Assembly: GCF_041956535.1 (NCBI RefSeq)
Contig: NW_027192193.1
Location: 688,719-752,718, forward strand
Source of the DNA: Calcarisporiella thermophila CBS 279.70
Lineage: Eukaryota; Fungi; Calcarisporiellomycota
Length of the DNA: 64,000 nt
Direction of reading: 5' to 3'
Part shown: positions 55,067 to 60,403 of the stretch, in pieces
How positions within the stretch are numbered: the first letter of the stretch is position 1
Layout of the letters: each line of letters begins with the position of its first letter
Position numbers and translations under genes: made by a program
The notes under the pieces: model-generated
What the model was told of the DNA's origin: nothing
The model's input: only the letters and a program-made list of their open reading frames with translations
The model's database searches: none

Positions 55067-55377
55067 NNNNNNNNNNNNNNNNNNNNNNNNNNNNNNNNNN
55101 NNNNNNNNNNNNNNNNNNNNNNNNNNNNNNNNNNNNNNNNNNNNNNNNNNNNNNNNNNNNNNNNNNNNNNNNNNNNNNNNNNNNNNNNNNNNNNNNNNNN
55201 NNNNNNNNNNNNNNNNNNNNNNNNNNNNNNNNNNNNNNNNNNNNNNNNNNNNNNNNNNNNNNNNNNNNNNNNNNNNNNNNNNNNNNNNNNNNNNNNNNNN
55301 NNNNNNNNNNNNNNNNNNNNNNNNNNNNNNNNNNNNNNNNNNNNNNNNNNNNNNNNNNNNNNNNNNNNNNNNNNNNN
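55067..55377. other. Assembly gap (311 N) flanked by T-rich low-complexity sequence
   Basis: Run of N in the sequence. Confidence 0.99.
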
Positions 55378-55691: not shown

Positions 55692-56910
55692 TCACCAAAC
55701 CCTTCTTCGTCTTCGACCTTGGCGCTCCTTCACTACCTCGTCATAATTTTTCACATGCCGCGACTGGCGTTGTCGGACCCTTTGATAGAGGTAGAGCAGG
55801 TTCGACAAATCCTTTGCGATGACAAACAGGCATCCGCCGATCACGTTCCGGTGGAACGTGTCAGTGCGGGCCCGTATGAACGCAAACCGTCCAAGGAAAC
55901 TGCCCATCGTGGAGGCGATGGCGGGGAGCAGAAGAGCCCCGGCAATCATCCGCCCCAGATCGGCCCCGTAGAATACTCGCATTTCCGTGTCGCGGTGCTC
56001 GTCCTCCTCTCTTGCCTCCACGCCACCCTGGAACTCTCCCGCCAGCTCGCGGTCCCGCTCCACTAGCTCTTCTCTCCACCCGTGCTCGCCCTCGGCGCCA
56101 AATCCTCCCACATCGTGCTGATCTCCGCGCAGGAGCTGCCTCCATCGTTTCTCCGGCCGCCCAAAAAGCTGGGCATAGACCCCATTGTAGAAGAGCCTAG
56201 CCCACGGGAGCAGGGACATGGTAAGCGCGGGAGTGGGGGGCCAGGTGAGGGCATGGTCACGCCCCAGCACAAGCAGCGGTACAAGGGGCATGAAGACATC
56301 CATGTGGGGAGTGCGAGAGGCCACCAGTAGTACGGGGATAAGCGGGAGCCCGATCCAGGTGCGCCAGGACCAGTCCCCTGCAAGAAGGGCCTCCCCCTCC
56401 TCCGCGCCACACACGGTCAGAACAGCGTAGGCCCTACAACGAAAACGAGAGAAAACTTATTCAGTCTTCCGCAAAATGGATCATGGCGGCTCGGGCCTAT
56501 CCGGGTTTGGACGGCTGGGAAATCCAAGAGAGGGACGCTCCTTACCCGTAGGTTGTTCCGGTGATGACGACCGAACATGTGAGGCCCACCACCATCAAAT
56601 ACGGGACTGCGCCTTGGAAGGCCAGATCGACCCGGGTCATGAGCTGCAGGAGGGTCGAGTTCCGCTCCGTCAGCACATAGGTGGCCTGGCACTGGGGGCA
56701 TCGCACCTTTTTCGAGGTCAATCCCTTTTGATTCTCAGAAATCCACTTGAGCAGGCACTCCTCGTGGCTGATGAGCGAGCATTGGCACGGCTTAACCCAG
56801 CGTTTGCCAGCCGACTCTGCGTCATCGCCAAAGCAGATCCAGCATTTCCGGGGATCCTCTCTGGAGCTTGAGGGCAAATGGGTCGTGGCTGATGTCGTGA
56901 TAGAGGCCAT
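55692..56910 (-). CDS. MARCH5-like RING-CH membrane E3 ubiquitin ligase
   Basis: RING-CH CWICF..WVKPCQCSLISHEECLLKWI..CPQC; TTYG/AYAV..; IGLPLIP; GALLLP..; IGGCLFVIAKD..YQR. Confidence 0.85.
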
Positions 56911-59181
56911 TCGCTCACGCGTCCTCTGATTAAGTCGCTGAGTGTCAAGGTTTTTTGTTCTTATATAGGAGTTGCTGCGAGTGGCACGGTTCTTTGCAAA
57001 GTATCAGTTGAGGATAGCCGCTTCCCAGGGGATAGCCCAAGCTCGGATTAGGCTTGCATTTTATTGCTGAAAAAGCACGAGTAAATTTGTCCCGGGTTCC
57101 ATGACAAATGGCACGCGCTCTGGTCTTTCCAGAGCACGCTGTTCTCAAGCTCAGTGCTCGCGCCATTGCCTCTGTCGATGCTCTCTCTCCTCTTTTTTTT
57201 CTAACCCGGGGCCCACCCAATGGCTACACCCGCCAGAGCCTCAAATTGAGACTTCCGGACCCCCTCCTCTCCGTATCCCTCAAATTCCCCTCCAGATTCC
57301 CCCCCCCCCCCCACACACACCACCTCACGCTCATATCACGTCAGAGCCCTGGCTGGCTTGACGGACTGCGGCCGACAGCCTTTCACCCGTCAACTTCTCC
57401 TAGGCCGTTTTCACTGACAGCAGATTGAATCATGCCATTTCGGAGTGTAACTTTCCCTTTTGGTGGAGCCAGGCCGATTCCGGATAAGCAAGAATTGGAG
57501 GAGGAAAAAATGCCATGAGGAAGCAGCGTGCACCTTACTGGCGCGATGCCACGCTAGAGGGGCAGCGGGCTCGCCATTCGAAAAACAAGCGGGGCAATAA
57601 AGCCCGATGTAGAAATTCCGCTTTGTTTTCCCCTCTTCTCTGCCCTCGCTAATAGAGTTGATTAGCAAATTAAATCACAGCAAGAACGTTGGCCCGTTTT
57701 GTGCTTTCCAGAGGAGCCTCCTCGATAATCGTGCATGGGTGAGGGGGGAGAGCACACATAGAGTTTGGGTTGAGCTGGAGTAATAGAGCATCATCCACGG
57801 CTGGGCTGCAGGTTTTGGGCGAAGAGAGCCGTGATGGGCTAGCGTTGGTGGAAACGCGGGAGCTCGCCGGTGGGGTGTAGGGGCTTGGGCAACCGGATCG
57901 CCTCTAGAGAAGGTAAGGAGGCCGAGCAAAAGGAGCAATTATTAAAGCTATTTCGTGTGTGCTTTATAATTTTATGTCCTGATTAATCTTGATTTTAGGA
58001 TTGTCCTGCCCTTCTCTCTCCCTTCCATCGGGCCCATCCCCTCCCCCCCCCCTTCTTTTCCCCTCCAACTGGATTTCGAATGTGCACAGCACGTTCTCCT
58101 TTGTTATTTTGGCCCTTCTTATCGTGGCGAGCACGAGGACGATAAGAATGTTGCACTCTTGAAAATGCACCTCCGCCAGAGGACAATAACAGGTTCATCT
58201 TAAATAAGAAGGAGGCGGGGGGAGCTTTGTATGAAATATGGAGCTAACAGCATGGAAGGGGATTCAGGGCTACTTGGACTTAAAAAATGGAATGGAAGAG
58301 GCCCACGAAGGCTATCTCCTCTGCCCAGACAGAATTGACGGGGTCATTTCAAGATCCTCTCGATGCATTAGAGTTGACAAATACACTCTATCTTCAAAGG
58401 GGACGACGCCGAAATCTTAAAAAACCAGTAGGACCGGAATTCGCGAAGACAGAGCAGAAACAAGGTTCTCTCAACCACCTCTCTTGCGGCTAGATTGATT
58501 CTTCCTCTTATCAGCTCCCGCGTCATCGTCGCTTGACCTGTTAAAGCTCAATTAAAGTATAATTCTTCGACCAAGGGGGGGAAGGTTTGAAAATTCAGGC
58601 TAGGTACATCGCTTGTCAATAAGGATAGAATCGGAGAGAAGATTATTACTAAAAAAAACCAAGCGTTGCATCGATAGCTCGACGACAAGGCTGCCATGTA
58701 TCTATTCCTCCCTGTTTGTCCGTGCCTCTGTAGAGTCCTCCTCATAGGGTTCCATCAGTACAGCTGGGAGTCGTTCCGAGCTTTTTTTTCTCAGCTCCTC
58801 TTCCCTGGCCTCCACACGGATTGCGTCCGTCGTCTATTTATTGCCACGTTAGGGAAAGCGAACCTGAGAAATTCTGGATTGCGTGTGTGAGCCATTATGA
58901 ACTTGGGATCAATTTAATTAAGGTTCGATTTCAAGTTAGGTGCATGCAATAACGAGTTGCTGCTTGGCAAGCGGGGCATATGGAGGAGGAAAGGATGGTC
59001 CTTCGTCCCCCCTCACCCATCTCAGCACGCAATCGGGTTTCCCCAAGGGAGCCACGGTAAAATTCAAAGAAAGACGTCTATCGGATCCGTTTGATATATT
59101 CTATGGAAGAGGCGAGTCCATCATCCTATTCCGTGGGTGGCGTCTTCAACCGGTTGCCGAGTTTCAAGAGGCAAGAGCACC

Positions 59182-59189
59182 TATATAAA
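59182..59189 (+). promoter_or_regulatory. TATA box upstream of the micro zinc-finger ORF
   Basis: TATATAAA ~150 nt before the ATG at 59337. Confidence 0.5.
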
Positions 59190-59336
59190 GGCGGGATCCG
59201 CGTAGTCGCGGTCGCATCTACAGGCCCCAGGCTCTTGATAAAATTTTTTAGACTTTTGTTCCATATAATAGCGCTCTCCTCCCCCATCCATCCCTTACCG
59301 GCTCCCATCTAGTATCCACCTAGACCCAATAGAGAC

Positions 59337-59438
59337 ATGCCTGCCACCACCTGCCCCTACTGCTGCTGCCGCTGTGCGGACAGCGACGCCCTTCGCGACC
59401 ATATCTTCAGCGTGCACCGGGGCATCCTCTTCGGCTAA
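59337..59438 (+). CDS. 33-aa micro-protein consisting of one C2H2-type zinc finger
   Basis: MPATTCPYCCCRCADSDALRDHIFSVHRGILFG*; spacing is C-x2-C-x12-H-x4-H with Leu three residues before the first His; codons are strongly C-ending; upstream TATA box. Confidence 0.65.
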   Translation: MPATTCPYCCCRCADSDALRDHIFSVHRGILFG

Positions 59439-59772
59439 AGCATCTGCCAGCCGGAACGTTTCCGAGGGCCCCCCTTCCATTGTTGTCATGTAGTATCCAA
59501 AAGCACCGTTCTATGTAGTTACCACCTCTCCCCACCTTTTAATTATCCTCATCCCACAATCGCCCTCTAGAGATTCAAGAGAGAGGGTTTAATGCTTCTT
59601 CCCCCTAATACCTTCCATTGTATTCTTGGCTGACTGGTTCCCCCAAGCGCTTTTTGGAGCACAAAAAATATAAAGACTGTTTTATTTTTGATATACATGA
59701 GATATGCTATGAACATTAGAGAGGATGCTAAGAATATTACGAAAGTTGCAGAATATGGCGGCCGCCCTCTCC

Positions 59773-60403
59773 CTACGGCTCTTCCTCCAACCCCTCTCCC
59801 CTAAACACGACCACATTGTTGTCGGTCTCGTGTATCCGCACCTCGTACAGCATTGCGCTCTTAGCTCCGCCCCCAAGCTGGTCCAATTCGCCCTTCATAC
59901 TTTTCCAAATGAACACGGCCAAATTCTCCGTGGTGCTATTAGTCACGAACAAATTCCAAGTTAAGAAACCAAATTCAGCATCGGGCTCAAGGGGGAGCTA
60001 GAAATGCAAGGAAAAGGAAGAATCCACTACCTTGGCACCTTACGGAAATGTTCCACGTCGAGGTCCAAGTTTCGGTGATCCAGCAATTCCAGAACCGCAT
60101 GGATGCATGTCTTGAGGTCGGCCAGGTTGAGGACCATGCCTGTTATCGGATCAATCTCGCCTCGTACTGTCACCTCCACTACCAAATAAAAAGTAGCTTG
60201 TGATTAACGACTCCTAATAACGGATGTATTTGGTAACTGTAATACCAAGTAGAGTTATTACATTTATAGTTATGACCATGGAAGTTTGGATTGTTGCATT
60301 TGGTGTAGAGCTTTTGGTTCTCCTCCGCGCTCAGATGGATGGAGTGCAGGCGATGGGCGGCAGAAAATGATTCTGACCGGGTGAGGTAGGCAATTGGCGG
60401 CAT
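59773..60403 (-). CDS. PTS: 6-pyruvoyl-tetrahydropterin synthase (animal-type PTPS)
   Basis: [20 protein letters not shown] / [56 protein letters not shown]; two introns, in frame. Confidence 0.95.

Follow-up and report, generated by a model that had tools for sequence, protein, structure and literature searches.

The stretch of DNA analysed here, referred to below as the window, comprises 64,000 nucleotides (G000:C3:688719-752718) of the 28.2-Mb, 116-contig genome of Calcarisporiella thermophila CBS 279.70 (JAZGQU), which is published in PMC11393059. The neighbouring GDPD gene is 99% identical to VTP21DRAFT_7197 of this species. The locus under study contains a short open reading frame (ORF) with the elements of a putative transcription unit and a gene on either side, at the following positions of the window.

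56545-56910, minus strand: gene for a RING-variant (RINGv, MARCH-like) finger protein, ATG at 56910
59182..59189, plus strand: element TATATAAA resembling a TATA box, at -155 relative to the ORF's ATG
59190..59336, plus strand: putative 5' leader, free of ATG, with G at -3
59337..59438, plus strand: ORF for a peptide with a single C2H2 finger, 33 codons from ATG to TAA
59352..59417, plus strand: core of the finger, Cys6 to His27, C-x2-C-x12-H-x4-H (AlphaFold2 and Foldseek)
59439..59772, no strand: stop-to-stop spacer of about 335 nt between the ORF and the PTPS gene, which would contain both 3' UTRs
59776-59952 and 60182-60403, minus strand: two exons of the PTPS gene, recognized with Pfam when searched separately

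The ORF is missing from the existing annotation. An initial annotation, made from the sequence alone, had described it as a stand-alone 33-aa C2H2 ORF with exact C-x2-C-x12-H-x4-H spacing, a TATATAAA about 150 nt upstream and an orientation convergent with the PTS gene. All of this is present: the ORF lies on the plus strand at 59337..59438, the element at 59182-59189 (-155), and the PTPS exons on the minus strand, with the two stop codons about 335 nt apart. The RINGv gene is divergent from the micro-ORF, with 2.4 kb between the two start codons, and no recognizable coding sequence was found between them. The nearest upstream ATG on the same strand is at 59103, which leaves 234 nt without ATG before the ORF. 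The encoded peptide begins with MP and ends six residues past His27. The four ligand positions of the finger are C6, C9, H22 and H27, Leu19 is at a canonical core position, and Cys13 replaces the usual central aromatic residue. Seven of the 33 residues are Cys, six of them inside a stretch of eight residues.

The base composition of the ORF resembles that of a gene. The GC content at codon positions 1, 2 and 3 is 0.53, 0.56 and 0.85, as compared with 0.48 in the 500-nt flanks. The GC3 of the neighbouring genes in this GC-rich compartment is 0.79-0.81, matching the 0.85 of the ORF, and over the surrounding 2 kb a value of 0.85 at any one codon position is attained in only 0.3% of 102-nt segments. 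The three-base periodicity and the GC3 signal both end with the stop codon. A coding-like GC3 signature is absent from all other open frames on both strands between 57430 and 59770. According to 200 block shuffles, the C2H2 pattern is expected by chance 0.11 times per 64-kb window, or 0.005 times when the Leu is required. The 2.45-kb micro-ORF region is unique in the genome, with no repeats of it elsewhere, and an origin of the ORF from a repeat or transposon was rejected on this basis. No Rfam family matched the region. The best Pfam match of the peptide was Zn_SUZ12 (22.7 bits, gathering threshold 28), and zf-C2H2_4 scored 18.1 bits (threshold 27, E 0.004). Single short fingers frequently fall under the Pfam gathering threshold.

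A further C2H2-like motif (CPAC-x12-H-x5-H, Leu included) is located at 57530-57598 on the minus strand, inside an ORF at 57411..57668 (-). It shares the 'empty' intergenic region with the micro-ORF, from which it is 1.7 kb away, and is read from the other strand. Its GC3 is not coding-like, three Pro stand at the expected start of the helix, and the family profiles did not detect it. Despite the 0.005 expected per window, it is probably due to chance or a very old relic.

The structure of the peptide was predicted with AlphaFold2 from a two-row alignment. The model is a beta-beta-alpha finger with a mean pLDDT of 87.4, a beta-hairpin at residues 4-13 (strands 4-5 and 12-13) and a helix at residues 16-26. 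Foldseek matched it in the PDB to the even-numbered fingers of ZFY, to tramtrack, to the GAGA factor and to 6c23_A, a cryo-EM entry of PRC2 with cofactors. These best matches superimpose on it with an rmsd of 0.6-1.3 Å, and alignments to solved C2H2 fingers over 26-27 residues have 0.7-1.3 Å; the Foldseek E-values are non-significant, as expected at a length of 33 residues. C6, C9, H22 and H27 agree with the C2H2 ligand pattern and are invariant in 15 of 15 aligned relatives. In the hydrophobic core Leu19 is present, and the aromatic position holds Cys13 in the window copy, Tyr in the paralogue described next and Phe or Tyr in the other relatives.

A six-frame search of the whole genome with the peptide gave one further locus, G000:C7:450304-450402 on the minus strand (E 0.001). 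This paralogue, called the C7 copy, also runs from ATG to stop in exactly 33 codons and is 47-52% identical to the window copy at the protein level. The DNA flanks of the two copies could not be aligned, and no upstream open-frame segment is shared between the loci over the 8-10 kb of each that were compared. At both loci, a divergent gene is found upstream at a distance of about 2 kb, and a convergent gene has its stop codon 335-365 nt away. Of 96 aligned bases, 46 differ, distributed as 13, 10 and 23 over codon positions 1, 2 and 3, and 11 of the 15 identical residues are encoded by different codons. When an equal number of changes is scattered at random, 15 identical residues are kept with P = 6e-5. 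The comparison covers 32 codons of a single pair that was itself found by protein similarity, and gives pN 0.32 and a saturated pS of about 1, which is inflated by the shift in GC3 between genome compartments (0.85 vs 0.38). As judged from these alignments, such a pattern of differences cannot come from conservation at the nucleotide level or from neutral conservation, and the pair shows purifying selection on the protein. The initial annotation had named conserved C/H spacing, ORF length and selection in other fungal genomes as a check on the ORF; within the C. thermophila genome, the C7 copy retains the ligands and the 33 codons, with the pN and pS values given above.

The paralogue also bears on the Cys residues outside the finger pattern. 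The initial annotation had noted three extra Cys and had regarded the micro-protein as a possible metal chelator or sensor of the metallothionein type. In such a reading the CPYCCCRC cluster would take up further Zn, Cu or Cd in addition to the structural ion. The extra Cys are present, and the cluster is dense as described above; the paralogue has two extra His within the corresponding stretch, which would fit a chelator. However, the extra Cys are specific to the window copy: the C7 copy has H, S and Y in place of Cys10, Cys11 and Cys13, respectively, and these Cys are likewise not conserved in the long family or in the other micro-fingers described below. The cysteines of CCCRC as a whole correspond to H-S-H-Y, the Tyr being the central aromatic residue there, and only the four canonical ligands are invariant. 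In the AlphaFold2 model the segment belongs to an ordinary finger hairpin, and no Pfam metallothionein family matched. The metallothionein-like part of the earlier proposal thus found no support, and chelation or metal sensing is given only a very slight probability, the smallest among the explanations considered.

The pattern CP[YF]C-x12-H-x4-H was found at eight places in the genome, as compared with none in the reversed control. Two of the eight are the micro-ORFs, and four belong to one small, lineage-specific family of longer proteins, named MG..LP-CPYC here after its start. The members are located as follows.

L027:1189-1590, minus strand
L028:1108-1590, minus strand
L021:1225-1590, minus strand
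L025:1477-1611, plus strand, with a second exon, each exon searched on its own; the donor of the intron, GTAAGG, overlaps an in-frame stop

The proteins of this family are 122-161 aa long. As in the micro-ORFs, the CPYC finger follows directly after the start codon, at the extreme N-terminus, with equal spacing, and the tail after the last His resembles that of the C7 copy. Unlike the micro-ORFs, the long proteins have an N-myristoylation-like MGxxxS start and continue after the finger with C[AS][PA]GY..LAK.G[YF]F, a region rich in Pro and a basic tail that contains a conserved Trp. The annotation lists one of the genes as the uncharacterized VTP21DRAFT_1980, with identical sequence and length. 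A word search found no relatives of the family. The window ORF, with its MP start and no C-terminal motif, lies outside the family as so defined. Compared with the C7 copy, the N-terminus of one long member gives 35 bits and the window copy 34 bits, and long members are among the best non-self matches of a profile built from both copies, with E-values of only 0.1-1.4, at which the link between micro-ORFs and long family is statistically not distinct from general C2H2 likeness. The C-terminal profile of the long family has no match in the 800 nt downstream of either micro-ORF, and no homology to this C-terminus was detected in frame behind the C7 stop. A resemblance to LDT.C..L.AK.G about 500 nt behind the C7 copy was rejected, its score not being above background. 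From their sequences, both micro-ORFs are best read as old finger-only offshoots of the MG..LP-CPYC family.

An offshoot may also be dead. The window ORF could be a decaying relic, a silent N-terminal fragment of a long-family gene that is open only because it is short, and the existence of the longer relatives is in keeping with this. A 33-codon frame is stop-free by chance fairly often, the core aromatic residue has been lost to Cys13, the TGC-TGC-TGC run could have arisen by slippage, and a clearly non-coding C2H2-like motif is located nearby, at about 57530-57598 (-). On the other hand, 47-52% of the residues have been kept although the synonymous sites are saturated, which needs long-lasting selection on the protein, and the periodicity with GC3 0.85 ends exactly at the stop codon. 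The missing trace of the family's C-terminus behind both copies means that the truncation is old, yet both fingers are intact, and neither the ATG nor the TATA box nor the ATG-free leader is missing. A relic is considered rather unlikely.

The other way in which the ORF could be misread is as part of a larger spliced gene, either as the last exon of an upstream gene or with its stop codon bypassed by splicing or readthrough. AG dinucleotides 4-15 nt ahead of the window ATG would serve the first version, as would the 2.4-kb upstream region, which is otherwise without explanation. Against it stand an in-frame TAG eight codons ahead of the ATG, the lack of a CTRAY branch motif in the upstream 50 nt and of any frame with coding composition from 57430 to 59336 on either strand, and the two loci themselves, which have no common upstream segment and whose upstream neighbours are both divergent. 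The idea of a last exon is much less attractive given that the relatives carry the finger at the N-terminus, one of them being backed by an annotated protein of identical length. The stretch from His27 to TAA contains no GT, so that the window copy cannot be a first exon, and its stop stands in the strong terminator context TAA-A. In the large HMMER search described below, no annotated protein contained the window finger. Further points in favour of a larger spliced gene come from the relatives: CTAAT...CAG directly precedes the ATG of the C7 copy, GTGAAG spans its stop, and the intron donor of L025 overlaps a stop in the same manner. Overall, a larger spliced gene is thought very unlikely for the window ORF.

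The donor-like sequence of the C7 copy reads CC/GTGAAG (the slash marking the junction) across TGA. Behind this stop, at L002:1225-1491 (-), there is a same-frame ATG frame of 85 codons with a Lys-rich tail in A-rich DNA. This arrangement could reflect splicing, readthrough or coincidence.

Relatives were also sought outside the genome. A word search with the 41-aa open frame gave no match, and a HMMER search with the two-copy profile against 1.84 billion representatives yielded nothing but generic proteins with multiple fingers; none of the annotated proteins contained the window finger. Both micro-ORFs were absent from a collection of 15 billion predicted proteins in an exact look-up. Metagenome scans with profile-derived patterns and the motif C-x2-C-x8-ALR.H[IV]FS.H gave one match, within a multi-finger protein of 555 aa, and the look-alikes of the peptide in the ESM Atlas are only clusters of short C2H2 fragments. 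Word, profile, exact and metagenome searches thus detected no relative outside the C. thermophila genome. This absence says little, because nothing close to the lineage has been sequenced; for the neighbour gene, the next-best match is 52% identical.

A 61-aa protein with two fingers, P0046, which was among the matches of the HMMER search, resembles the C7 micro-ORF over its first 33 residues and starts four residues before the first Cys, as the C7 copy does. It is encoded at L016:1628-1813 (+) and on five like contigs in Logan assemblies, between phosphoglucosamine-mutase-like and Ku genes in a compact, prokaryote-like context. Because of these prokaryote-type neighbours, P0046 was set aside as a case of general finger likeness and is not regarded as a true relative.

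The two copies belong to a wider class of short frames. There are at least 150 C2H2 finger matches in the genome, of which 12 in open frames of 79 codons or less were analysed. Eight of the 12 run from ATG to stop, encode 28-45 aa and have the C-x2-C-x12-H-x4-H layout, so that the genome holds at least eight further unannotated one-finger micro-ORFs, as follows.

L029:398-517, plus strand
L031:356-475, minus strand
L030:398-487, minus strand
L032:374-475, minus strand
L033:380-481, minus strand
L034:395-484, minus strand
L036:398-481, plus strand
L038:395-529, plus strand

In these eight the first Cys comes 3-7 codons after the ATG, and 1-20 residues follow the last His. By sequence they fall into two or more groups, MWRCEYC... 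and M..C[DH][LFY]C...QLRYH..., and three pairs gave pS 0.78-0.89 and pN 0.17-0.28. Together with the window copy and the C7 paralogue they make up a set of ten. TATA[AT]A occurs between -200 and -40 in eight of the ten, as compared with 12% of random positions in the loci sampled, and nine have a purine at -3. All ten are absent from the collection of 15 billion predicted proteins.

The window ORF is a stand-alone gene in the preferred reading because its paralogue is conserved as a protein of 33 codons, no upstream exons are shared, the finger is N-terminal in its kin and TATA elements are enriched. The ORF would then be a real, unannotated gene for a one-finger microprotein that is transcribed and translated and binds zinc; the probability assigned to this is slightly above even. 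The unannotated micro-gene proposed at the outset is in this respect supported by the paralogue, the signs of selection and the TATA enrichment. It would have its own promoter, and its product of 33 residues would be one classical Cys2His2 finger and nothing else. A single Zn would be bound by C6, C9, H22 and H27 in the beta-beta-alpha fold.

Beyond ligands and core, A18, R20, I23, F24, S25, R28 and L31 are conserved between the window and C7 copies. Given the spacing of three to four residues along the helix and the tail, we infer that this set lies on one face. The base-contact positions (-1, 2, 3 and 6) are D, D, A and D in the window copy and N, T, A and H in the paralogue. Base-specific reading of DNA is not proposed, because these positions are acidic in the window copy and not conserved in the paralogue; contact with a protein, or less likely with RNA, would be made through the conserved face. 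The peptide would be a competitor of the microProtein type acting on its longer relatives. Competition with the finger of the long family would be the most economical mode of action. As with microProteins, the peptide is small (33 aa), consists of one domain and has larger relatives with the same domain in the genome, the link to these being statistically weak. The initial annotation had also suggested a dominant-negative interaction module, and this idea appears more plausible now because longer proteins with the same N-terminal finger exist in the genome.

Several known systems are similar in part. The even-numbered fingers of human ZFY (PDB 5znf, 7znf, 1kls) have the same C-x2-C-x12-H-x4-H spacing, about 41% identity to the window model over 26-27 residues, an rmsd of 1.0-1.3 Å and, like the window finger, an unusual residue where the central aromatic one is expected. 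They are units of a DNA-binding array of 13 fingers, whereas the window finger would be the whole protein, with no linker or neighbouring finger and with acidic residues at the base-contact positions. The SUZ12 zinc-finger domain (PF23320), the best Pfam match, shares a CP[WY]C...H-x4-H finger with the peptide; the match (E 8e-5) is below threshold and covers profile positions 24-48, or 25 of 70, and neither the VEFS box nor another part of SUZ12 is present. Plant microProteins such as LITTLE ZIPPER and MINI ZINC FINGER derive from a domain of larger proteins and compete for or sequester partners. They are functionally proven, 70-100 aa long, and contain a leucine zipper and a ZF-HD-type finger, respectively. 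The window peptide shares their small, single-domain make-up, while its mode as a competitor is a proposal drawn from sequence and model. The N-terminal half of human ZNF706 is disordered and SERF-like. At 76 aa, ZNF706 is also a very small protein in which one C2H2 finger is the only folded part, though it is more than twice as long as the window peptide, and no sequence relationship was detected between them. It is reported to act on nucleic-acid structures, namely G-quadruplex RNA, and not as a sequence-specific transcription factor (bioRxiv 10.64898/2026.04.10.717804).

It is tentatively suggested, at somewhat less than an even chance, that C. thermophila has at least ten one-finger C2H2 microproteins of several families, which have their own TATA promoters, are under selection and form a layer of small molecules that, in a zinc-dependent way, compete with larger zinc-finger proteins or serve them as adaptors. 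Within this ten-member scheme the window ORF would be the CPYC-type member from the family with the N-terminal finger. As far as a literature search and general knowledge reach, no finger-only gene system has been described in fungi. The new aspect would be a classical C2H2 finger as an entire protein. The window peptide, with 33 residues, would be among the smallest natural proteins with a single classical zinc finger. If expressed, the peptides of this set would make it possible to study, in a simple and natural setting, which roles an isolated C2H2 finger can fill by itself, be it as a competitor, adaptor, or RNA or protein binder. They would also show how regulators of the microProtein type originate via truncation of larger genes. 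A whole set of such genes would have been missed entirely by standard fungal annotation, a practical warning that conserved genes of early-diverging fungi may be hidden by length cut-offs.

A run of 311 N is located at 55067-55377 of the window, inside a T-rich low-complexity tract, and is possibly an assembly gap. The composition profile of the window falls to a GC content near zero because of this run.
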